Shown: piece by piece, positions 12,091 to 64,000 of the stretch
Layout of the letters: every line of letters starts with the position of its first letter
How positions within the stretch are numbered: the stretch's first letter is position 1
Assembly (NCBI GenBank): GCA_965112735.1
Contig: OZ218965.1
Coordinates: forward strand, 1,054,001-1,118,000
Direction: 5' to 3'
Source of the DNA: Phaeosaccion multiseriatum
Lineage: Eukaryota; Protista; Ochrophyta, other classes
DNA: 64,000 bases
The notes under the pieces: model-generated
Told to the model about the DNA's origin: nothing
What the model saw: the letters and a program-made list of their open reading frames with translations, nothing else
Databases searched by the model: none
Program-made: the position numbers and the translations under genes

Positions 12091-14352
12091 TCACAGGGAC
12101 AGCGTCTGCACAACCAAGCGTTTCTTGGGCAGGAGGCGTTTCATGCGAGGGTAACACCTCACCACACGCATGCTCGGAGGGAAGTCCAGCCTCTGCTCAT
12201 AGGCCCGACCTAATCCGAGTTCCTCCAAACAGGGCGGTAGCACTAGCGGCTCATTATACGAGAAGCACATGGAGAGGTCGAGCTTCAGTAGGGACGGGGG
12301 GAGACGCAAGGGTAACTGCCCCACTCCGCCCGTGAAGCAGTGCCCAAAGCGAGCCTCCTTGAGGCCCTCTGGCAACGCCGTCTGCTCCTGGTTGTAGCAG
12401 TAACCGAACTTGACGCTCTGGAGGGATGAAGGCAGGACAAGGGCCTGGTCGAAGCGCGTCCCTGACGTGTGTGTGTAGAGGGGGTGGGTGGGTGGGTGGG
12501 TGGGTGAGTGGGTGAGTGTGCGTAGGAGGCGGGATTGAGGAAATACAAGGGCAAGGGCTCAGAGAGGCCGGCACGTATCCGGGGGCGGCCTGCACACCCC
12601 CAAAAAGCCCCCAATGGGAGTCGCAAGCAATATCGAAAGGGAGACATACGAGCCTTGTCCTGCCTCTATGTCATGCATCCACCGCCGCCAGCCCCGTCCC
12701 TGCGCTCCGTCCCCTTCCCTCCTTCTCTTTCCTTCCTTCCTTCCTTCCTTCCTTCCAACTCCTCCCTCGGCTTGGGTTGTCATCCTTGTTTGAGGAGCGT
12801 TTTCTTTTCTCGAACTTACCAAACTCGGCATGCCTTAGGCCCTCAGGCAGCTCAATCTTGGCATTGAATAGCCCCGCAAGCTTGAGGGTTCGCAAGGTGG
12901 AGGGCAGCTTGACGTTCTGACGAAAGCAGAAGTCGAACGAAACATTCTCCATGCCCTCCGGTAGCTCTATAGGCCGATTAAATCTTGCTCCAAACGAGGC
13001 CGTCACAATCGACGATGGCAGCTCCACAGGATGATCGAAGAAGAACCCGAAGAAAACCTCTCGTAGGTGAGTTGGTAGTTCGATGGGGTGATTCCAGTCG
13101 TCGCCAAACTGAAGCTTGCGTAGCGTGGAGGGCAGGGCACCCACCTGCCCGTTGACGTTTTGCCCAAACTGTGCCTCCACCACACCCTCAGGAAGCACCA
13201 ACGTTGGGTCTTCCAGTCTGGCGTGCTTGATCACCATGAGGACTGGGAGGTGCGAGCCCTCATTATCATCATCATCATCGCCAACTGGTTCTTGCCACTG
13301 CTGCTGCTGCTGCTGCTGGTGGTGGTCCTCCTCCTCCTCCTCCTCCTCCTCCTCCTCCTCCTCCTCCTCCTCCTCCTCCTCCTCCTCCTCCTCCTCCCTC
13401 TCCTCCTCTTCCTCCTGCTCCGCATAGCGCCCACTTACGACGGTCTGATAGCCATCCAAATGCGTCCCGCTCAGCACTCTATCCAGGCGTACCTCCCGGA
13501 GCGAGCTGGGCAAAGTCACGCACACAGACGCCCCTGCTGCAAAGGTGACTCTCTTCAACCCCTCCGTCAGAATCAGACTCCTTCTCCAACCGGAGCCGAA
13601 GGTCAAACTCTCCAACGTTGCAGGTAGCTCCAAGGCGCGGTTAAAGGCTCGGCCAAATGTCACGTCTCTCACATGCGGCGGTAGCACTGTCGGCTCATTG
13701 TAGTTGGCCCCACACTCGATGGACAGCAGCGATGCTGGAAAGTCTGTGTGTTGGTTGTATCTGAAACCGAATGTAACCGTCCGCAGGGATGAAGGGAGCT
13801 GTGTGGGCCTATTGTACTTGTCACCGAGGTGTAAGTGTTGGAGGCCTTCGGGAAGCTCCAAAGCCTGGTCAAAGGTGGCGCCTGCTGCAGAGTGCATAAC
13901 AGAATACCCCGAGAGAGAGAGAGAGAGGAATGGGAGAGCGAGAGAGTGAGAGAGTCAGTGCGAGAGAAAAGAGAGAGGAAAAGGGATGGAGAGAGCGAGG
14001 GAGAGAAAGAAAGAAAGAGTGTGAGAGGAAGCAGTTGGACTCAAGGTGCACGATGGCATTAATCTTGCCCTCAAACATTGCTTGCCAGTAAGAAGCTGAC
14101 TGCTCCTCCTGTGACTGTGGCCCCACCAACGTACCGAGCTTGAGAGTCGTAAGAGAAGAGGGGAGAGCAAAGCGCACCGCTTCATTGAAAGCCTTTCCGA
14201 AAGTCGCCTCTAGGAGCCTCGCAGGCAGAAGGACGGGCTGTGAAAAGGAGTCCCCTGAGTGTGTGTGCGTGTGTGTGTGTGTGTGTGTGCGCGCGCGCGT
14301 GTGTGTGTGAGTGTGTGTGTGAGTATGTGTGTGTGTGTGAGTGTGTGTGTGA

Positions 14353-14383
<31 letters not shown>

Positions 14384-15636
14384 AGTGTGTGTGAGTGAGA
14401 TAGAGACACTAGTGTGTGCGAGTGCGCGGCAGGCAATAAATAGATTCGTCAGCCACCGAAAAAGAGGCGGCGAGGCCTCAGCACCCGCGCTGCTCCTGAA
14501 AGCGTTTCTGTCGTTCCCCCTTTCTCATAACACGGGAGGAGGGAGATGTAAAGAGGAGGAGGAGGAAGACGAGGAGGAGGAGGAGGAGGAGAAGGAGGAG
14601 GAGGAGGAGGAGGAGGAGGAGAAGGAGGAGGAGGAGGAGGAGGAGGAGGCCAGCCTTGGGGAGTAACCCTCCCTTGCAAAAAATTGCTCTGTTTACTCCA
14701 CTCCACTTCAATGTGCTTCATCTCACCGAAATCGACTCGGAGAAGGGTGCTCGGAAGCTCTAGCGGTTGATTGAAGCCCACGCTCCGTCTTCCCCACGAG
14801 TCCGCCCCACCCTCCAGCCCCCTGAAGGACAGCTCCTGCAAGCCCTCACTGAGGGCCGGCGCCTTGTTATACGTGCCAAAGCGCACCACGCGCAGAGAGC
14901 GCGGCAGCTGCACGGCCTGTCGAAACGAGTTAGAGAAAGTTATCTCTTCTATCCAGTCTGGAATGCGGACTGGCCCTTCGCCGTCCCCAAGCGAGAAGCG
15001 AAAGGAGCCTAGATAGAGGTCCTTTACGGACCGGGGCACCAGGCTCAAGCTGCTGTGCGCCAGTTCCGCTGCCCCCTTCCTGTAGGCAAGGGCATTCCTG
15101 GAATGCCGATCCTCCGCGTTGTGCCTAGCGGAAGGAGAGGAGAGCCCCAGCTTCACTTTTGTGACCGGGAAGCGGCGGAATGCACCCTCCTCCCCGACAA
15201 AGCCCCCCATGTCCTGGCGCCGCTGCGCCTGAAGCATGACCAAGAAGCGCTGTCGCACATCCTGTGGGACCTCCATGCCGATGACTATGCGTCTCGTGGC
15301 CAAGGCATCCACTTCTCGGCAGACGCCCCAAAGGTCTCTCTGGGAGCTCACCTGCCTCGTGACGATCTGGAGCACAAGCAGGCCATTCATGTCAGGGGTG
15401 GTGGGGGGCTGCTGCTGCTGCCGCTGCTGCTGCTTTTGCTGATGTCCTTGCTGCTGTTGCTGTGGTTGGTGTTGCTGTGGCTGCTGCTGCTGCTGCTGCT
15501 GCTGCTCCTGCTCGTGCTGCTGGTACATTCCGACCTCCATCTGGGCGGCAGCTGCGCCTTCTGCGGCTGGCGCTGGAGCCGCTGCTTGTACCGACGATTC
15601 CCAGGTCGCCGTTCGCTTCCTTCCTTTCCTTTCCAT
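12091..15636 (-). CDS. FNIP-repeat protein, multi-exon, possible F-box-like N-terminal helix
   Basis: Many ~20-22 aa repeats of the FNQPLELPSTL/YNRPTQLPSSLRTVTFG/FDHPVELPSSI type across ORFs 14449-15717, 12671-13897 and 12091-12375. Confidence 0.85.
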
Positions 15637-16358
15637 CCTTGTATATATATATATAGCGTTGGTGCGTCCGTTCATAGTTCGACTTCGCCGCCATCTGTGG
15701 CCCACACACGCACGCACATCATTTTGCTCTTTTCTTCACTTCTTTCTTTACGCACATACTAGAAGAGCCTAAGAGCCTTAGGTTGGTTCCTGTGAGCCAA
15801 TAAAGTGCCTTCGCTGCTGGATGGTGTATTGGATCGAGCGATCGATGTGTTGGTTAGGGGGGGGGAGGAGGTGAGCAGAAAGCACATTACAACGTGTGAA
15901 ACACGTAAGAGACTTCGTGACTTAAGTGTGTGTCCTGTATTACCTCCCTCCGATCCCCCACAATGAGCAAAAGCGCAAGCCAAGTAGGACCTGTCCTGTC
16001 TGTCCTGTCGCTCCACGTCCTCTCTGGGTTCGCCACTCTCCACCCTCCCCTCCTCCTCCTCTCCTCCTCTACTCTCACTCTACCCCTCCCCTTCATCCTC
16101 TATACTCCCATACGGGGCAGCTGCAACCCACCCCTTTGCCTTTCCTCCACTCCCTGCTACCTTCTTCCTCCTCCCCTCCCCTCCTCTCCTTCCTCTGTCG
16201 CCCCCTTCCTTTCCACAACAGAGAAACAAGCAAAAAACCCCACGCTCGTCCACACACCCCCCCGCCTACAATAAAAACATAAAAACCAAAATCACAACCC
16301 CAAACCCTCAATCCAAACCTCCTGCCCCACCGCCATCCACTGCCATCCCTCTCCCCAC

Positions 16359-46977: not shown

Positions 46978-48312
46978 TCAGGACGATGGTTCCTCCTCCA
47001 CCGTCTCCTTGTCAAAGCGCTGCGCGGATGCCAGCGCACCAATGAGCCTCTCGTACACGGCAATACCCTCCAAGAAGACACCCTTGTCCAAGTACTCGTT
47101 GTGTTCGTGCAGCAAGACGGGTGTATTCCTCATGGGTGAAAAGCCCAGGGCGGGCACCCCTAGCTGCCGCAAAAAGCGGGAGTCCGTGGCCGCGGGAAAG
47201 ATTTCCGGGTCGATGTTCGTGCCCACTTCCTTCATGGTGTCCACAAAGAGGCCCCACCAGGGGTTCTTGGCCCTGTCCAGAGAAGTGAGGTAGTGCTCGG
47301 AGAGAGGGGAAGTCCACTCTGCAAAGTCCCATGTGACACCCTCCTCCTTGCACCACTCGTCCACCATGGCACGGAAATCCTCGGGCTTGAGATGCGGACT
47401 GATGCGCACGTCGAACCCCGCCTCTGCCTCGATGGGGATCACATTGAGCGAGAAGGTTTTGCCGCCATCCGCTGTCACTCCCCCTCTGAGGAGGGTCAGG
47501 TTGAGCGTCGTCACATCGCCGAGCTTCTTGGCCGTGGCGTGGCTGCACCCTCCATGGTGTCCCAGCTCCTCCCGCTGCTGCTCTCTAAAGGCCAGCGCCT
47601 TGTTGCACACCTCCACGAGCTTCATCATGGCTGTGTCCTCGATGAAGCGGCTACCATGGCCCGTGTTGCCCGTGGCCTTGACGAGCAGCCACCAGGGCGT
47701 GCGCTCGCCGTAAAAGACGGTGTAGGCGTCGGCCGTGTTGGCCAGGCCCTCGTCCAGCGCAAGTCCCACTGGCTGCATCGCTTGCCACAGCTCACTGGCT
47801 AAAAAGGCTCCCATCCCGTCCTTGCCTCCAATCTCCTCGTCGGGGACAAAGCTCAGGTACACCGTGCGCACCGGCACGAAATCGGCGGCCTGTAGCCGGC
47901 GAATCGCCTCCAGGTACTGCACACACACGCATTTCATGTCCTGCGCCCCTCTGCCGTAGATTCTGCCGTCCGCCGTGAGCTCCCCTGCAAATGGGTCGGT
48001 GTCCCAGTGGTCTGACATGGCCGGGACGACATCGTAGTGCGAGTTGAGCAGCACGCACGGGAGGGAAGGTTCCGAACCCTGCCAGGTCATCAACACGACG
48101 GGCTTCCCTTCCACGCACTCCACCACCTCACAGGGCAGACCCAGAAGAAGGGCAAACTCACTGAGCCACAGAGCGGCCTCAGCATACGCCCCCGAGCGCA
48201 CCCCGGATCCACTCACTGTTGGGATGCGCAGGAAGGAGCGTAGATTCTCCACTTCGTCCTTGCTTATCTCCACACTTCCTTTGCTGCCCCTAGCACCATT
48301 CTCCTCGCCCAT
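46978..48312 (-). CDS. ACY1: Aminoacylase-1 (M20 peptidase family), intronless
   Basis: LRSFLRIPTV, LLNSHYDVVP, IYGRGAQDMKCV, FVPDEEIGG, ALDEGLA, GHGSRF, NVIP, FPAATDSRFLR, PVLLHEHNE in one uninterrupted ORF. Confidence 0.95.
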   Translation of the reverse strand: MGEENGARGSKGSVEISKDEVENLRSFLRIPTVSGSGVRSGAYAEAALWLSEFALLLGLPCEVVECVEGKPVVLMTWQGSEPSLPCVLLNSHYDVVPAMSDHWDTDPFAGELTADGRIYGRGAQDMKCVCVQYLEAIRRLQAADFVPVRTVYLSFVPDEEIGGKDGMGAFLASELWQAMQPVGLALDEGLANTADAYTVFYGERTPWWLLVKATGNTGHGSRFIEDTAMMKLVEVCNKALAFREQQREELGHHGGCSHATAKKLGDVTTLNLTLLRGGVTADGGKTFSLNVIPIEAEAGFDVRISPHLKPEDFRAMVDEWCKEEGVTWDFAEWTSPLSEHYLTSLDRAKNPWWGLFVDTMKEVGTNIDPEIFPAATDSRFLRQLGVPALGFSPMRNTPVLLHEHNEYLDKGVFLEGIAVYERLIGALASAQRFDKETVEEEPSS

Positions 48313-48367
48313 CTCTCTCCTGTCCTCCGTTCGCTGGAAGGGTGCGATCTTCCCCCGCGGAGACACA

Positions 48368-48461
48368 CTCCTGCACGAACTTCTGCGCGTGGTTTCGAGT
48401 AGAGACTCTGACACCCTCCTGCACGAACTTCTGCGCGTGGTTTCGAGTAGAGACTCTGACA
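48368..48461. repeat. 48-bp direct tandem duplication (2 near-identical copies) in the ACY1/Nth divergent promoter
   Basis: CTCCTGCACGAACTTCTGCGCGTGGTTTCGAGTAGAGACTCTGACA occurs twice with a 48-bp period. Confidence 0.9.
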
Positions 48462-48629
48462 AGCAGGGTGGAAGAAGGGAAAAAGGGAAAAAGGGAAGGG
48501 ATGGGGAGAGGAAAGCCGCAGTAAGTCAGCGGGAGATCTACGCAGAGTTGATAAAGTAGTTTTGCTCACGTGCTGCTGCCTTTGAGCGAGCAATATTGTG
48601 GTGGAGCAGCACTTGATGATACCCTGGTG

Positions 48630-53896
<5,267 letters not shown>

Positions 53897-53936
53897 ACAG
53901 CTCCACGGTAGACGTCCCCCCGTAAGGAATCCTCAA

Positions 53937-54250
53937 GCACACGCACGCACGCACGCAGCGCGCACCGTAGTGATTAGGAAGAGGGGGGCTTCATTGTGGA
54001 CCCAACTAAATTTTAGTTTCAGTTCCCACTTTTTTTCTGTGAAGTGATGCTCTCACATCATTTGTTGTTATATAGCAGCGGCAGTAGGACTCGCGGCAGG
54101 AGAATTACGAGGAGAATACTTGTATGTTGCACGAATAGCAGTCACACAAGCAGCGGCGTCACAAGTATGTTTCTAAGCGCTGGTCTTGGGCAGCAAAGAA
54201 ATTTGGAAGCCTTGAAGTGATCGGGCCACACGTCGTTTCTGTCATAGCAG
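53937..54250 (+). promoter_or_regulatory. Conserved upstream module of the ankyrin-like paralogues (further copies at ~56963-57160 and ~58940-59265)
   Basis: GCACGCAGCGCGCACCGTAGT ... TTTCAGTTCCC ... TCTGTGAAGTGAT ... TATAGCAGC precedes each paralogue. Promoter or 5'UTR-intron role is inferred. Confidence 0.55.
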
Positions 54251-54532
54251 CAGCGGCCGCAGCTCAAGAGGAGGCACGAGAACTAGCAGCAGAGAATACT
54301 CCCAAAGCATCTTCCGATTCAGGATAAGTTTTGTGGGGGGCGACCGTGCGGAGGGAGCGTCTTTGAGCGGGCCAGCGGCAGGAGGGGGAGGCACGGAGGC
54401 GCTGGCCATCAGGAACCGTCCACCGGCTCGAACAAGCCCCTTTTCTAGAGGCCTAGTGGAGATGAAGAATGGGGCGCAGCAGGCACCGTACCTCCCTGCT
54501 CAGCAGAGGAAGGAGGGCAGGAAAAGGCACCG

Positions 54533-54971
54533 ATGAGGCTGCAAGGCACTCCTTTGAAGGCCACCGAGCTCGTCGCGCTCGACATCATACAGCAACTCGA
54601 ACAGCAGGGCACAGGAAAGGTCCCTTGCCAGGTGCGGTCCGAGTCCCCAGCGGCGGGTCAAGTCATGTCGCAAACTCGGCCCAGTCAGTTGTGGACGGCC
54701 CCTACAACCCCCCAACGTGCTGGAAGAGGAAGTTGTGCGCTGCGCGGTCGTTGACTTTGTTGGGGGCGGATCACTATATCTCTTCACAGAGCTGGAGGAA
54801 TGCCTACGTGAGCAAGCATCTTTCACCATGCAAATCACATGGCAGTGTGACGCAGTCCGTGGACCGCATATATATATACCCGGCTCGGCGGAATGGATAC
54901 ACCGTGGATGTGAATACGCTTGCTTCGGCAGCCATGCAGCAAGACGTAAATATGTGCAGGGCGCTGTACCA
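54533..54971 (+). pseudogene. Truncated, frameshifted copy of the F-box-like/ankyrin-like gene (left arm of the fold-back)
   Basis: MRLQGTPLKATELVALDIIQQLEQQGTGKVPCQVRSESPAAGQ is homologous to 57483 onward. Indels lie around 54700-54800, and the copy ends at the palindrome centre. Confidence 0.85.
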
Positions 54972-55323
54972 CATCTGGTACAGCGCCCTGCACATATTTA
55001 CGTCTTGCTGCATGGCTGCCGAAGCGAGTGTGTTCACACCCCAAGGTGTACCCATTCCGCCGAGCCCAGTATATGCGGTCTACGGACTGCGTCACACTGC
55101 CATGTGATGTGCATGGTGAAAGATGCTTGCTCACGTAGGCTTTCTTCCAGCCCCAGCTGATCGAAGCAAAGAAGACATATTGCTTCGCCCCAACGAAGTC
55201 AACGACCGCGCAGCGCACATCCTCCTCTTGCAGCATCTTGGGTTTTTTAAGGGCCGTGCACAACTGAGTGGTCTGAGCATGCGACATGACTTGACACGCC
55301 GCTGGGGACTCGGACCGCACTTG
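54629..55323. repeat. Long inverted repeat (fold-back), ~345-bp arms, 4-nt loop CATC at 54972-54975
   Basis: 54922-54971 is the exact reverse complement of 54976-55025. The outer arms pair with mismatches out to CAGGTGCGGTCCGAGTCCCCAGCGG / CCGCTGGGGACTCGGACCGCACTTG. Confidence 0.95.
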
Positions 55324-56922
55324 CGAGGCTGAGGCGGGGAGAGGGAGGAAGGCGGGAAGGAGGGGAGGAAAGGGGGGAGGGAGGGAGGGAGGGAGGGATG
55401 GAGGGAGAAGTGAGGGAGGGAGGGAGGGAGGAAGGAAGGAAGGAAGGAAGGAAGGAAGGAAGGAAGGAAGGAAGGAAGGAAGGAAGGAAGGAAGGAAGGA
55501 AGGAAGGAAGGAAGGAAGGGAGGGAGGGATAGTGTTGGAGTTGCGGAGGGGGGTTAAGTAGGGGAGGTTGGCATGGTTGAGTGAAGAAGAGTGAAGAGTG
55601 GTATTGTTTTCGATTGTACTCATATATGTGTGGAGGGCTTGGGCGGGACGTTTTCCATCACCGCATCTCCCCTACTTGAGGTCACTGGGGCCCCAACGAA
55701 CAACGCAAAACCCCCTCTGCCGTGTCGCCCCGCCCTGTCCTCTCCTCGTCTGTACATCATAATGTGGGCTTTGCGGTCGACACGCACATCCACCGACAAG
55801 CAGTGCGCTGCGGCCTCACTGTTAGAAAGGAAGAGAAGGACGTCAAGGGGAGAGTAGAGGAGGCGCTCACGAGGTGAGTTTCAGTTCCAATTAGCTAGAG
55901 TGGGTCGCTTCCGTCGGCTGCTGAGAAACACCCTACCCTTTCCCCCCCTTTCCCTCGCAAAGCTGTGCCATCTCTCTCTCTCTCTCTCTCTCGGGCGCGC
56001 GCTCTCCCCCATGGTGTTTATTAGCACCCACCCTCTCCCACTCCCCTCCGCCCCCCTCTCTCCCCGCCCCGTCTCTGTACCCAAACATGTCTCACCTCAC
56101 GTCCCCTCCCCTCCCATTCACTGCCATCCCCCTCCTCCCCTTTTCCTGTCCCTGCTGTCGTGTCCCCTGTCGCCGCCCGAACCTTCGTGCATGCAGCCAC
56201 CAGCCACTTGCCCGTGAGGACTGGAGCAAGCTGCATCTTCAACTCATCTACTTTGGCAAGTTGGGTTTTGCCCGGTGCGTATCGAAGATTGAAGGCGGTG
56301 GGGGGGCTGGGGGACTGTAGAGAAGAAAGAGAACATGTCCACATGAACAGGTCTTTGACGAACCTTTGTGGGGTTGCTTCAACACGTAGGAGTCAGTTTG
56401 GGCATGTCCAGACGCAGCCCATTGTTTGTGTTACTCACCCCAGCGATGCACGTTCACTTCCCTCTCTCTTTCTTTGGTGTGGCGCCTCTTGCTCAGATCC
56501 TCTGATCATCGTTCGCCTCTCTCTGCCCGTCCCCTCTGCTGCCATCCATCCATTCATTCCATCCATCTGTGCATGAAAACACACCCCGAGCAGGCCAAGA
56601 AGCACACCCCTGCAGAGTGCCCGATTTGCTGCTGGATCAACAAGGCCGGCAGGGTCTCGAGTGGCGGTGGAAACGGAGCCACCAGCGCAGACGGAGGAGG
56701 GGAAGGAGGAGGAGGAAATAGTACCGAATACAGGAGAGCATAGAAGACGTGACTGCCGAGTCGCTGCAGTCCACCGGCAGAAAGACCGGGAAACACATCA
56801 TCCTCTATAGAGAGAGGATGGAGCAAATAGAGGCCCGTAACGGCCAAACCCGGCCCAGCAGCAGCCAGCCGGCTAAGCGAATGGACAAGAACGATGACTC
56901 AGTGGGCGTGAAGGCGACGTAA
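55320..56922 (+). pseudogene. Duplicated, degenerate 3' part of the endonuclease III gene (part of intron 4 through the stop)
   Basis: Colinear with ~52010-53896. The exon-5 acceptor CATAAG is mutated to CATAAT, and the exon copies carry indels (e.g. GCAGCCACCAGCCAC, GACGTGACT). Confidence 0.9.
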
Positions 56923-57482
56923 ACAGCTCCACGGTAGACGTCCCCCCGTAAGGAATCCTCAAGCACACGCACGCACAGCGCGCATCGTAGTAGGATAGCA
57001 GGCCCGGTCTCAGCCCTGTACGCCATATACCTCCATCCAAGGCCTACCCAAGGGGGAAACTCAATTTCAGTTTCAGTTCCCCGGGTTTTTTTTCTGTGAA
57101 GTGATCGCCCCACGCTGTTTACATCGTTTCCTGTTATAGCAGCTGAAGCAGCGGCCGCAGAGGGACAGCGGTACTAGCAAGAGGAGGAAAATAGGACTCG
57201 GTGGCACGAGAACTGGCAGCAGAGGCAGCGGAGGTGGCAGGAACACGTCAGAAGAATCTTCAGATTCAGGATAGTGCTGTGGGGAACGACCGTGGGGAGG
57301 GAGGGTCTTTGAGCAGACCAGCGGCAGGAGGGGGAGGCACTGAGGCGCTGGGCATCAGGAACCGTCCACCTACTCGCAAAAGCCCCTTTCCCAGAGGCTT
57401 TGTGGAGATGAAGAAGGGGGCGCAGCAGGCACTGTCACCTCCCTGCTCAGCAGAGGAGGGAGGGCAGGAGAAGACACCAACT

Positions 57483-58604
57483 ATGGGGCTGCAAGGCACT
57501 CCTTTGAAGGCCACCCTGCTCGTCATGCTCGACATCATACAGCAACTCGAAAAGCAGGACACAGGGAAAGTCCCTTGCCAGGTGCGGTCCGAGTCCCCGG
57601 CGGCGGGTCAAGGCATGTCGCAAACTCCACCCAGTTGTGTAACGCAGAGGGGGGCTTGTCAAATTCCCAACGTGCTGGAAATTGAGAATGTGCGCGGTGT
57701 GGTCCTTGACTTCGTTGGGTCGAAGCAATATCTCTTTATTGCTTCGATCAGCTGGGGCTGGAAGAAAGCCTACGTGAGTAAGCATCCTTCACCATGCACA
57801 TCACATGGAAGTGTGACGCAGTCCGTAGACCGCATATACTGGGCTCGGCGGCATGGGTACCTCTTGGATGTGAACACACTCACATCGGCAGCCATGCAGC
57901 AAGACGAAAATATGTTCAAGGCGCTGTACAACATGGGCTGTCCGTCTGGACCACGGGTGGTGCGGGGAGCCATAAAGAATGGCAGGCACGGCGTTGCCAT
58001 CCTGAGGTGGCTGCACGGCCTCCCTGGCAAAGAGGGATGCCGTTTCGACACACTAGTGTGCGAGTATGCCGCCTTGGTTGGAGCAACGGACAAGCTGGAG
58101 TGGCTTCTCTCGGACGAGGTCAATGCGCCGTTCAGTTTCACCATCTGGTTGACCGCCCTACAAAGCAAGAATCTCGAGGTCATAAAGTGGGTCTTCGAGC
58201 ACCCCAAGATCAGGGCCGAGATGGAGAGTGCGACAGCCCCTGCTGCCCTGCCGCAACCCCTCTTGGCCACCCAGAATAGTGAGTGGAGAATGGGGGCCAA
58301 GTTCGCCATCACCTACAGTACTTTGGAGGTGCTCAAGTGGCTGCACGCCAATGCACGTGAGTTCTGTGAGTGGAATCCAGAGCTCTGCCAAACGGCAGTG
58401 GGCGTAGCACAGAGCCTTGAGATGCTGCAGTGGCTCCGCTCGGAGGAGGTGCGGTGTGAGTGGGACCAGTGGGCCTGCCCTGTGGAGTTGAAGGCATCGG
58501 ATGAAGCTTCCGGTCATCACCGAGAGCCCACAGATCCCGCCGCAATGAGAGAGATTAAGGAGTGGGTGCACGCCAACGGGCACCCTTGCACATGCTCGGA
58601 CTGA
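57483..58604 (+). CDS. Intronless F-box-like/ankyrin-like helical-repeat protein
   Basis: The ATG is conserved in all three paralogues. VRGVVLDFVGSKQYLFIASISWGWKKAY is followed by repeats AILRWLH..GC.FD..VCEYAA..G..DKLEWL, LEVIKWV, LEVLKWLH..CEW, LEMLQWLR..CEWD. Confidence 0.85.
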   Translation: MGLQGTPLKATLLVMLDIIQQLEKQDTGKVPCQVRSESPAAGQGMSQTPPSCVTQRGACQIPNVLEIENVRGVVLDFVGSKQYLFIASISWGWKKAYVSKHPSPCTSHGSVTQSVDRIYWARRHGYLLDVNTLTSAAMQQDENMFKALYNMGCPSGPRVVRGAIKNGRHGVAILRWLHGLPGKEGCRFDTLVCEYAALVGATDKLEWLLSDEVNAPFSFTIWLTALQSKNLEVIKWVFEHPKIRAEMESATAPAALPQPLLATQNSEWRMGAKFAITYSTLEVLKWLHANAREFCEWNPELCQTAVGVAQSLEMLQWLRSEEVRCEWDQWACPVELKASDEASGHHREPTDPAAMREIKEWVHANGHPCTCSD

Positions 58605-59534
58605 TGCAGCTCGGATGCAAGCTGAATGAGAAGGAGAGGCGACGTGCGTCTGTAAAGTTGGGACGGCTTATGCCTCAAGCCACACGGAGCTGATGCGCCG
58701 CGAGTGAGGGAGCGAAAGATGTTTATGCCCGTCCGAGGGTAGCGGCCGCAGCTGCATGCCACGGAGGGAACGCAGTGTCCTTCTGTGACGGCTTCTACAG
58801 CCCAATTGTGCAGCTCTCCAACGCGTCGCTCCGCCCCGCGCACTTTCTTTTTTAAAAACAAATTGAAAAAAATTCATGAGAGTGTTATGGTTGCATGAGA
58901 GAGGGTGTGTTCTACAGCAGCGGGCACTACCAACTATGGCACACGCACGAACGCGCGCAGCGCGCACCGTAGTGATATAGGATAGCAGCAATGAGGCCCG
59001 GTGTGTCTCTATAAACGAAGTTCTGAGCTGGCCTTCATTGTGGACCCAACTAATTTTCAGTTTCAGTTCCCCAATAGTTTCTGTGAAGTGATCGCCCTCA
59101 CATCATTTGTTGTTATAGCAGCAGAAGCGGCAGTAACTCAGCAGCAGGAGCAATACAAGGAGAGTACATGTATGTTGTACGAGTACCCGTTGCACAAGCA
59201 GCTACTCGTCGCAGGAGTACTCCTCAGCGCTGGTCTTGGTCAGCAAGGATTTTTGGAAACCATTGAAGAGAGAGGAGAGTGAGAAAATAGAGAGGAAAGG
59301 AGTGCAGCGGAATTGCCATGAAGAGGAATGGTCTACTGAGATAGCCCTAATGCCTTCACCATTCCACTTGGGTGTTGTGGAGTCAGGCACCGTCCACGAA
59401 GACGAGTCGACTCACTCGCCCAAGCCCCAAGAAGTCAATTCCAACCAGAGGCCCCGTTTGGAGATGAAGAAGGTCCTGCAGGCACATTGTCAGCCCCCTG
59501 CTCGACAGAGGAAGGAAAAGAAGCGAAGGCACCT

Positions 59535-60410
59535 ATGGGGCCGCAAAAGGTCCCTTTCATTGCCACCCTGCTCGTCATGAACGAGATGATAATGCAAGCG
59601 GACGGACGGGGAACGGAAGCAGCGCCTTGTGAGGGGTCCCTGTCCTCAGCCCGTGGTCAGGCTACCTTGCAATATCAGCCCCAACTAGGAGGGGACATAC
59701 AGGCGAGTACGGAGCTTGACAAATTAGCCCGCAAGGTACTTGGAGAGGAATGTGTACGCGACCGGATCGTTGAATACGTCGGGAGTCATCGCTATGCCTT
59801 CATTGCTCCGATCAGCAAGAATTGGAGGAACGCCTACGTGGTGAGGCATCGACCACTCACCTCAGATTCGAGCGTGAGCGAGTCAATGGAGTGCGAAAAC
59901 TGGGCTCAGCGGATGGGATACACATTCTCCTCGTAAACCTTTCCACAGGCAGCGTTGCGTCGCGACCTGAACATGTGCAAGCTGCTGCACAGCCTGGGCT
60001 GTCTGTCCGTGGGGAACCGGCGGTGACGGCCGCAGCAATATGGAATAAGGGGCACGGTCATGCTATCCTCAGTTGGTTGCGCATAATAGACCTCCTCGAC
60101 AAGGAGAGCTGCCCTTCCGACACCACAGCGTGCATTGCAGCAGCCTGCTGTAGAGGCGCGGTCGATAGGCTGGAGTGCCTTATGGCGGATGATGTCAATG
60201 TCCCCTTCGCTTCGACCGTCTGGGAGAACGTAGTGCTGAACGACTATCTTGCGGCAATGCGGCGGGTCTTGGAGTATCCCAAGGTCACCGGGGCCGAGAT
60301 GGAGAGAGCGCCTGTCTCTCGTTTCTGGCAGCAACTTCTCCATGCCGATGACGCTAGCGGGTGGAGACATGACCCCTTCTTCGTCGCTCGCAAGTACACA
60401 AGGAGGCCTC
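59535..60410 (+). pseudogene. Third, more diverged paralogue of the ankyrin-like gene, with premature stop and frameshift
   Basis: MGPQKVPFIATLLVM...RIVEYVGSHRYAFIAPISKNWRNAYV...WAQRMGYTFSS* (TAA at 59934). Homology resumes in another frame (AILSWLR...DRLECLMADDVNVPF...EYPKVTGAEME). Confidence 0.8.
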
Positions 60411-60661
60411 AATACTTTTTACTAAATCACTTTTTGTTTATTTTGTAATTGAAACATGAAAATTAATGCCTCACTTGAAAGTACTCTAGATGAGACAGCG
60501 CGGGCCGTTTGACCGACTTGAAGTGCACCTGACGTCTGAAACCATCGCCTGATGAACACTCCCTTCTCTAAACTTTATAGCGGTTGGCTGGATGTAACGG
60601 TTGGCTGGATGCATGGTCCCCGGACCTCACATGGGCTGTTGTGCTGCCATGGCCCACGCAG

Positions 60662-63600
60662 TTAGAGGGCAGGGCAGTCGTCATAGAAGAGGAAGCCACA
60701 GAATCGACAGATCACATTGCCACTCGTAAAGCAGCCGAGCCCACCTCCGGCGCAGGAGGCTGCATCCTCGAAGCACTGTGGGAAGGCAGACAGAAAGCAA
60801 AAGCAAAAGGTAGAGGCAACAGCGTCCGTCATTGACATTGAGTCTCGCACGAACTTGGCGATGGCGAGGCACCGCGCGGGCTCGGACACTCGCTCGACTC
60901 CTCAGGCGCTTTGACACGCACCTGCTCATGTACGCCGCTGGGAAGGATGCCGGTGCAGGCACAGGAAGAAGTCTGCGCTGGCGCTGACTGCGCTGGGGTG
61001 GAGTCAGCGCCAGGACAGTCAGGGAAGGGGGCCGCTCCGCAGAAGCGGCAATCTTCTCCGTTAATGTCACTGTAGCAGCCTAGGCCACCACCAGCGCAAA
61101 GGGCGTCCTGATAGCACTGAGGAGAGGGAGGGAGGAGGGAGGGGGGATGGGGGTTGGAGTACGTTAGTCGCTCTGTCTGTAGGTGGTTGGTACTCGCTAG
61201 CTCCAGCTTCTCTCTGTCAGAGGGGCCATCTCACCTGCTGCTCCTGAGCGTTGGCCAGGAAGCCATTGCAGACACAGGCGTCTTGGTACCCGCCCGAAGC
61301 CGCAGGGGTAGGGGTGGTCGTCGTGACAGTTGAAGGGGGGGGAGTAGTACCAGTGCTCACAGGAGTGCTCGTAACGGTAGAAGGCTGAGGTGTGGGTGTC
61401 GGTCCGGAACTGGCAGATCCAGGGCAGTCCGGGAAGGGGGCCGCGCCGCAGAAGCGGCAGGCTTCTCCGTTACTGTCACCGAAACATCCGAGGCCGCCGC
61501 CGGAGCAAGAAGCGTCTTGGTAGCACTGAGGAGGGAAGGGGAGGGAGGTGGGATACGTAAGTAGATACGTAAGTGGAAGTGCCAGTGGTTGGTGCTCACC
61601 TGCTGCTTTAGGACGGCCGTGACCATGCCACCGCACACGCACGCGTCCTGGTAAACGCCCGACGCCACCGCGGTAGGGGTGGTGGGCTGAGGCGTGGATG
61701 CGGCAGTGGGCTGAGGTGTGGATGCGGCAGTGGGCTGAGGCGTCGATGCGGCTGTGGGCTGAGGCGTGGATGCGGCAGCGGGCTGAGGCGTCGATGCGGC
61801 AGTGGGCTGAGGTACAGGTGTGGGGCCGGTAGGAGTAGGAGGCAGCCCACCTCCCGTGTATGGCGCAACGTTTGAGCCAATCCCGTTGGCGCACTCTGCC
61901 GTAGCAGCGCCGAGGAAGCCTGCCCCCGAGTACTGCACACCATCGCGGAGACAGAAGTCAGCCAACGGAGACGGAAGGCCTTCGCTGCAGCTGTTCCCAG
62001 CGTTGATGAGTGAGGTGGAGTCGACTTCGTCGAAGAAGATGAGCAGTTTGACGTTCATGTGCTCCACGTTGCACGGCACCTGTGCCGTGATGGTGGTCTT
62101 GAGGGGCTGGCCGGGGAAGTGCGCCAGGAGGCGAATCGACTCTACGCCGTTGGCCAGCTCGGTGCGCATGCTGATGAACTCCATGTAAGGATGGTTCACA
62201 ATATCCCCCTGCAGGTTCAAGTCGATCTGCCAGCGGCAGTCCGGCAGCTTGGTAGCTCTGATGTAGTTCATCCACTCTGAGGTCGGACCGAGTCGAGGGC
62301 GGGGGGAGGGACGAGAGTGGATCAGAGGACAAGAGGCTCTCGAGTCAGCAGCGTCGATGGGAGTATAATTGCGCTTTTCGCCATGGGTACTACACGGTCC
62401 GACCTCACGCTGCCTACCCAAAGCGGCCTCACTCACTCACTCACTCAGTCAGTCAGTCAGTCAGTCACTTACTCACTCACTTATTCACTCACTCACTCAC
62501 TCCCTCACTCACTTCCTCACTCACTCACTCACTCACTCACTCACTCACTCACTCACTCACTCACTCACTCAGTCAGTCAGTCAGTCAGTCAGTCAGTCAG
62601 TCAGTCAGTCAGTCACTCACTCACTCACTCACTTAGACCTCACTCACTCACTCACTCACTCACTCACTCACTCACTCACTCACTCACTCCCTCACTTCCT
62701 CACCAGCGGGTCCTGTGCCGGCAGTGGTGCCATAGACGCCCCCCGGGGCACACAAGGAATTATCCTGAGCTCCGGCAAAGTGGAATGAGTCCGGCATGCT
62801 GCGAGGGGCCGTGCCATTGGCCACTGCCTCATGCTCGGCCGCTCCCTCCGAGAAGCCGTAGTGCGGCATCGTCACAGGCTACTCGCGAAGAGATCGAATG
62901 CACACGCACGCACACACAGTAACCACGGCGAGGAGCAGCGCGACATTAAGTGTCAGTCCGGCAGAGAGAGTACGTGTTGCCCCACAGGCTGCATACCCCC
63001 CTCCTGTAAGGCCAAAGGGCTGACTCACCGAAGTGTACCCCGTCGGGCAGCCTGCGCCCTCGAAGCGGGCCCTCCAACGGATATCGGCCGTGTCTCCGAT
63101 CTCTCCGGGATTGGTTCTTCCGTCGAAGGTGAGCGGCACGCTGGGGAGGCTGGCGTCTCTGATTCCGTAGTCCGCCATCCAGGAGTAGAGAGGCATCCAC
63201 GTGCCTCCATCGAAGCGCTCGAAGAAGACGCTATCAATGTAGGGGTTCCTCTGCCACAGATCGGAGTCCGCCATCTGTAGCCTTGTGTACCACCGAGGCA
63301 CTGCATGAGTGCACCGCAGAAAGGAGGGGATCGGGGGGAGAGACGCGTCATGCTTCGAGGCGATGCAATATGGATACAAGAGCGTCAAGGCAACCCTTGC
63401 CCAAACCTCAGCGCTCCACGCGGTGCTACTAGTGGAGGCGCTGAGTGTAGGAAGATGGCATGCAGCAGAACACTTCTCTCAGTCGCCGCACTTACATCCG
63501 GGGGGGGGTCCGTCGAAGTAGTCCTGAGCAAAAGAGGAGACGCAAGGCAAGGAGGGTGAGACGAGAGGGCTGCGGCGCCTTCATTATCCTTCAGTAGTGG

Positions 63601-63928
63601 AGCGTGCTTCCCCCCGATCCCACCATGCCCCCGCTGTCTTTCTTTTGACAGTCTTCTTGTCACACCGGCCGGTGGGGCTGCTGCCGCGTTCGTGGATGTC
63701 TGCGTGCAAGACAAAGGAGCGTACCTTCGTGGTGAGGGTCCAGGCCAAGGCGTCGTCTCGCGCTTCCCCTCCGAAGTAGTACTGGCCCCCTGGTTGGCAC
63801 TCGGCCTGCCCTACAGCATGGCGAGGGAGGCCAAGCCCTGCCAAGATGAGGGGCACAAGCAGCATCAGTGGCACTCGCTTCTTCCCCCCGCCAAACCCTT
63901 GGCCTTGCTGGCCCAGCATTTTTATCAC
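60662..63928 (-). CDS. Secreted Cys-rich protein with three GGGLGC..CRFCG modules and Pro/Thr/Ser linkers, multi-exon
   Basis: Hydrophobic leader MLLVPLILAGLGL..AVG; modules CYQDASCSGGGLGCFGDSNGEACRFCGAAPFPDCP, CYQDALCAGGGLGCYSDINGEDCRFCG and CFEDAASCAGGGLGCFTSGNVICRFCG; linker (STPQPTAA)x5. Confidence 0.75.
61683..61812 (-). repeat. 24-bp coding tandem repeat encoding STPQPTAA (mucin-like linker)
   Basis: GGCTGAGGCGTGGATGCGGCAGTG variants, ~5 copies. Confidence 0.85.
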
Positions 63929-64000
63929 AAAGATGAAGAAGAGCCCTAAAGGATAGGTACTCGTAGACGTGTTTGTGACGGCCCAGGACCGCTCAAAGAA

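Follow-up and report, generated by a model that had tools for sequence, protein, structure and literature searches.

Foldback inversions are known to form via single-stranded DNA hairpins (PMC7467729). The arms of inverted repeats are homogenised by template switching in yeast (PMC8604942), and gene conversion from arm to arm acts on the palindromes of primate sex chromosomes (PMC8327919). At the RNA level, Drosophila hairpin RNAs (hpRNAs) can originate by a partial 5' duplication adjoining the target (PMC10317233), and plant proto-MIR genes via inverted duplication of the target gene (Allen et al. 2004, doi 10.1038/ng1478, as cited in PMC4513859). The brown alga Ectocarpus, related to the organism considered here, has one Dicer, one AGO and one RdRP together with active small-RNA pathways, and for its miRNAs no origin from protein-coding genes was seen (PMC4513859).

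The locus in this report lies in a 64,000-nt stretch of Phaeosaccion multiseriatum DNA, referred to here as the window. It is a fold-back with a total span of 695 nt, probably an old inverted partial duplication that truncated G1, one member of a tandem array of F-box-like ankyrin genes. The intact gene whose coding sequence the arms resemble, termed the parent, stands downstream, and the features on which the comparison rests are as follows.

52128 to 53957, unstranded: spacer S1, an older copy of spacer S2, ~94% identical to all three S2 copies.
53937 to 54262, plus strand: U1, the upstream module of the dead left gene copy, closer to the module of the third gene (58939-59261) than to that of the parent (56957-57154).
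54294 to 54628, plus strand: 5' part of the dead copy G1, homologous to parent 57241-57578 at 79-88% identity.
54629 to 54971, plus strand: left arm, 343 nt, in gene sense, corresponding to parent residues ~127-245 including the F-box-like head, and frameshifted relative to the parent.
54922 to 55025, unstranded: perfect core with loop, a 50-bp stem (54922-54971 against 54976-55025), read as a product of arm-to-arm conversion or re-synthesis.
54972 to 54975, unstranded: loop of 4 nt, CATC.
54976 to 55323, minus strand: right arm, 348 nt, with the gene sense on the minus strand.
55135 to 55195, minus strand: parent-like tract of the right arm, including the 14-nt TTTGCTTCGATCAG, which is missing from the right arms of the two other copies and from all left arms.
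55324 to 55560, unstranded: GA-rich microsatellite (GGGA/GGAA) directly bordering the right arm on its outer side; this outer junction is identical in all three copies of the fold-back.
55561 to 57120, unstranded: spacer S2, between fold-back and parent, 97-99% identical between the three blocks described below.
57201 to 58604, plus strand: parent gene, an intact, single continuous ORF of 467 codons for a divergent ankyrin-repeat protein with an F-box-like head.
57581 to 57938, plus strand: parent segment homologous to the arms, containing the variable patch 57879-57938.

Self-comparison of the window returned five gap-free inverted-repeat pairs in which 54629-54971 is tiled against 54976-55323. 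A gapped alignment of the two arms gives 292 matches, 39 mismatches and 25 gap positions, so that ~88% of aligned bases match. The geometry given in the earlier note, with arms of ~345 bp, a 4-nt loop and 50 bp of perfect pairing, is thus accurate. Folded as RNA, as that note had suggested, 54629-55323 forms a single long hairpin with a minimum free energy (MFE) of -592 kcal/mol, compared to -250 +/- 7.7 for dinucleotide shuffles (z = -44.6). No other long, short-spacer fold-back occurs in the 64-kb window. The only other fold-back in the 138 kb examined is small and unrelated (contig C16, 931017-931136 and 931234-931354; 121-nt arms, 91% identity, 97-nt spacer). No known RNA family was matched at the Rfam gathering score in 50000-64000. 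Dense microsatellites (GGAA/GGGA, ACAG-type and others) at 50400-52500 and 55324-55560 are the source of spurious long ORFs on either strand. A coding role for the arms is ruled out, the left copy running through all three frames with stops. We also set aside a 262-codon ORF on the minus strand (54835-55623), which begins in the microsatellite, has no Pfam match and is broken in both other copies of the fold-back by a 14-nt indel.

Both arms are homologous to parent 57581-57938, the right arm with 298 matches, 43 mismatches and 22 gaps and the left arm with 272 matches, 56 mismatches and 43 gaps. This bears out the derivation of the arms from coding sequence by inverted partial duplication beside an intact paralogue. 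The paralogue had been placed at 57483-58604; its intact ORF and its end hold, and the start does not, the ORF being open from 57201 with a first ATG near 57408. A Pfam search of the parent protein found ankyrin matches below threshold only (Ank_4, E = 0.0025) and no match to an F-box. The closest proteins in a public search were ankyrin proteins at 24-34% identity, and no closer homologue appeared there; among them, distant relatives at 24-28% identity have Ank domains, in two cases with an F-box as well. Within its own genome (assembly of 67 Mb in 22 contigs) the family has 355 candidate loci; all 91 loci that were scored have E < 1e-60, with 40-50% identity over residues ~130-467. Near-identity to the parent is limited to three genes.

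The left arm does sit behind its own copy of the family's upstream module, as the earlier note had seen: U1 is repeated at 58939-59261 with 76-96% identity and, more weakly, at 56957-57154. The homologous reading frame of G1 shifts across all three frames and hits stop codons, and G1 is therefore a pseudogene.

The whole fold-back is present three times on contig C16, which carries the window: at 1108629 in the window, at 945061 in the same orientation (block B1) and at 980269 inverted (block B2). Each of the three blocks, 4.4-6.4 kb in length, holds the fold-back and an intact parent gene of its own, separated by the same spacer. Collinearity with B1 (944393-950778) covers window 53981-60313, and collinearity with B2 (981138-976760) covers window 54446-58871. 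The U1 module is present in B1 (95% identical) and absent from B2, where collinearity begins at 54446; B1 lacks an S1 copy at the position that S1 occupies in the window. The junction between right arm and GA microsatellite is identical across window, B1 and B2. Since three diverged copies share it, the fold-back had a single origin before the blocks were duplicated, and it is no read artefact. It is thus older than the segmental duplications that spread fold-back, spacer and parent to three sites on the contig.

B1 and B2 sit in opposite arms of a large inverted segmental duplication on C16 (~932-949.4 kb against 988-976.7 kb), whose arms are ~12-17 kb long and 82-98% identical, with ~27 kb between them. 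Next to B1 only, there is a second inverted fragment of the parent gene (C16:950777-951194, 82-85% identical to C16:948212-948707). It replaces the end of that block's third gene, at the point where collinearity with the window stops (60313). Inverted duplication, repeated at the same place, supports a rearrangement-prone locus.

An alignment of nine sequences (three left arms, three right arms and three parents) separates the history of the outer arms from that of the centre. The outer 120 columns resolve three lineages, one each of left arms, right arms and parents, that are 16-22 mismatches per 100 apart, plus indels, in keeping with the outer-arm divergence that had been claimed. Within each lineage the three blocks differ by only 0-4 mismatches. 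The lineages being near-identical across blocks, the outer arms were already 16-20% different before the block duplication, and nothing compensatory has occurred in them since. When differences attributable to conversion are removed, 8, 8 and 12 remain in ~340-380 columns, close to the spacer divergence of roughly 3%. Since duplication the drift of the outer arms has been roughly as fast as that of neutral spacer, without compensatory change.

The inner 60 columns group by block and not by arm side. One patch type is common to the left arm, right arm and parent of the window, and another to the left arm, right arm and parent of B1. Among 305 consensus pairs over the three copies, eight are altered on both sides, and all eight fall in columns 308-342, at most ~35 nt from the loop; outside these columns there are ~15 one-sided breaks and ~8 wobble changes. 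In addition, 43 of the 71 block-private differences carry the base of a paralogous segment in the same block, compared to 16.7 expected with random new bases. Within each copy the loop-flanking bases have been made alike again, and every centre has been remodelled in a different way: the central sequence is CATC in the window, TTGTT in B1 and TTCTCAT in B2, the arms of B1 and B2 are ~7 nt longer than those of the window, and perfect pairing extends over 50 bp in the window, compared to 25 bp in B2. The confinement of double-sided changes to one tract, with the 43 of 71 paralogue-like differences, explains the perfect core by gene conversion; since conversion accounts for it, selection is not needed. 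The earlier note had left selection and intra-palindrome conversion side by side. Its second option agrees with the grouping of the inner columns, the clustered double changes and the paralogue-like differences, and its first finds no support in the sequence.

The arms have also swapped patches with the neighbouring parent by non-allelic gene conversion. In the middle region the right arm of the window resembles the parents, whereas the right arms of B1 and B2 resemble left arms. Over columns 215-300 the window's right arm and its own parent show 77 matches, 6 mismatches and no gaps, compared to 59 matches, 10 mismatches and 14 gaps against the B1 right arm. We read 55135-55195 as a putative conversion tract between parent and arm, in either direction. 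In the parent, patch 57879-57938 differs at 4-7 of 60 bases among three copies that are otherwise 98.5% identical; in two of three blocks its type agrees with that of the arms in the same block, and it may belong to the hypervariable surface patches of the family. The nearest copy changes with the segment compared, the spacer 55561-56500 pairing the window with B2 (99.1%) and the arms pairing B1 with B2 (97-98.5%). These trees conflict, which points to ectopic exchange between distant blocks as well. Between blocks the arms diverge by 5-8%, compared to 1-3% for the spacer. Hypermutation of the arms need not be invoked, the excess being explained by conversion from diverged paralogues. With three copies and no outgroup, the tests for the direction of conversion and for selection are weak.

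A reading at the level of DNA is the simplest, and every step in it is a known process. The locus has what a foldback scar would be expected to leave: head-to-head copies across a spacer of a few bases that truncate a gene, and arms that are homogenised near a remodelled centre. A break or stalled fork in G1 may have been repaired by copy-back along an inverted template, and this foldback-inversion or template-switch route would give a head-to-head repeat of codons ~127-245. The scar would then have been carried along in later segmental duplications while its outer arms drifted, its centre was broken and re-synthesised, or converted, to become perfect again, and its arms exchanged patches with the parent. 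No clear microhomology can be reconstructed at the founding junction, the centres being rewritten in every copy and the outer junction bordering on the GA microsatellite.

Two observations sit less easily with this account. Fragility would be expected of a perfect 50-bp palindrome with so short a loop (4 nt), yet all three copies still contain a fold-back, which could hint at tolerance or usefulness. Furthermore, a single simple founding event does not fit the distances, as left arm, right arm and parent are equidistant (16-22% apart), yet S1 and S2 are only ~6% apart. A single duplication or inverted triplication is accordingly a poor simple fit.

The strongest rival to a scar is that the fold-back is a working hairpin-RNA (endo-siRNA) gene, transcribed from a promoter retained from G1 and restraining the three near-identical parents, with hairpin and target amplified together as in the hpRNA/target clusters of Drosophila. 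Transcription through both arms by RNA polymerase would, if it occurs, yield an RNA that pairs into a long double-stranded hairpin, which a Dicer-like RNase III and Argonaute could convert into small RNAs against the three parent copies. The inverted repeat is long enough for an extended RNA duplex (the 305 consensus pairs), and the predicted hairpin is strong. With the gene sense of the right arm on the minus strand, this arm would be antisense to the parent mRNA on a plus-strand transcript, and 45 of the 328 right-arm 21-mers match the parent perfectly, 175 of 328 within two mismatches. A domain search of the genome located genes for RNAi proteins:

Argonaute, contig C13: PAZ and Piwi domains.
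RdRP, contig C1: RNA-dependent RNA polymerase.
RNase III, more than one gene: that on contig C2 has two tandem RNase III domains.

Given these genes and the 45 perfect antisense 21-mers, a role in hairpin siRNA is possible, and the Drosophila and Ectocarpus precedents cited above lend it some plausibility, as does the threefold duplication of hairpin with parent.

Co-duplication, however, is automatic for neighbours in one block, and B2 lacks the upstream module proposed as the promoter. Pairing kept by selection, as co-evolution with a target would leave it, was not found: the three copies, a sample of low power, show one cluster of changes at the loop and ~15 breaks. Compensatory changes are not scattered along the stem, pairing beyond the conversion tract only decays, and arm drift, with conversion discounted, is about as fast as that of the spacer. 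The Ectocarpus miRNAs likewise offer no parallel for an origin from coding genes. We therefore regard a selected hairpin-RNA function as unlikely, and incidental siRNA production as somewhat more likely; small RNAs from the hairpin would then be a side effect, for which no trace of selection has yet been seen. That a working hairpin-RNA gene was born beside a fast-evolving F-box-like ankyrin target and then amplified three times with it seems quite unlikely.

Two further proposals of the earlier note are not borne out. It had suggested that small RNAs could silence this gene family, which reaches too far: the arms match only the three parents and the one inverted fragment beside B1; no right-arm 21-mer matches the neighbouring gene G3, several hundred other members are likewise unmatched, and a genome search with arm DNA gave no match beyond the three blocks. 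Its candidate proto-miRNA locus is not supported either, the 695-nt, near-continuous duplex having no defined miRNA/miRNA* duplex and no Rfam match.

The exchange of patches admits another reading, which we judge very unlikely, namely that the dead arms serve as pseudogene donors, storing variant patches that are converted into the variable face of the parent in the manner of the pseudo-V donors of bird antibody genes. Arms and parent within a block do share patch types that differ between blocks. The left arm and parent of B1 agree completely over a 19-nt patch core and show differences at 4 of 60 columns, compared to 8-10 against the other two parents, and the patch is the part of the parent that varies most between blocks (4-7 of 60 bases). 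Transfer may nevertheless run from parent to arm, only one or two conversion tracts are seen, and a donor role has no need of the inverted arrangement, for which tandem paralogues of the ordinary kind would be equally suited.

An assembly or read artefact, in the form of a chimeric fold-back read, is scarcely credible and is rejected: long-read data do contain such chimeras, and a perfect core with a tiny loop would suit one, but the fold-back lies inside a 2.4-Mb contig, its outer junction is shared by three diverged paralogous copies, and the arms differ by 39 mismatches and indels, a divergence that the earlier note had already held against it.

Elsewhere in the window, an aminoacylase-1/M20 peptidase gene on the minus strand (46978-48462) is 64-68% identical to those of Phaeothamnion, Discosporangium, Tribonema and Ectocarpus, which places the genome among the ochrophyte stramenopile algae, close to brown and yellow-green algae. 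Two ORFs with FNIP repeats lie on the same strand at 12671-13897 and 14449-15717 (Pfam PF05725, E = 3e-30 and 3e-5).

If the fold-back is only a scar, it provides a clean natural example of how a gene-sized fold-back ages, with arms that drift, a centre that is rewritten and patches that are traded with a live gene; that a perfect core need not mean selection is a caution for the reading of fold-backs in general. If it is transcribed and diced, it would place the route from inverted duplication of a target to silencing RNAs on the brown-alga side, unlike the miRNAs of Ectocarpus (PMC4513859). Were it a working hpRNA gene, stramenopile algae would have their first gene-derived hpRNA/target module, comparable to the hpRNA networks by which Drosophila keeps young and rapidly evolving genes in check.

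Compared with the foldback inversions described in yeast, human disease and cancer genomes (PMC7467729), the locus shares the head-to-head copy, the spacer of a few bases, the truncation at the turn-around and the recurrence in a repeat-rich, rearrangement-prone region. Unlike them it is old and has become fixed in the germ line, it has passed through later segmental duplications, and it shows no reconstructable priming microhomology, terminal duplication or breakage-fusion-bridge product.

With converted palindromes (PMC8327919; PMC8604942) it has in common the clustered double-sided changes that re-equalise the arms and the grouping by locus and not by arm. Homogenisation here, however, extends no further than ~35-60 nt from the loop, and the outer arms still differ by 16-20%. 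The arms are, moreover, fragments of a dead gene in place of intact genes, and they exchange sequence also with a third, directly oriented copy ~2.6 kb away.

The likeness to Drosophila hpRNA and plant proto-MIR loci (PMC10317233) lies in a long hairpin that sits beside a protein-coding gene and consists of a partial 5' copy of it, in the extended antisense complementarity, and in hairpin and target having multiplied together. No sign of co-evolution came from the window's hairpin. At 695 nt and with ~88% pairing, its transcript would be of the hpRNA type and not of the miRNA type.
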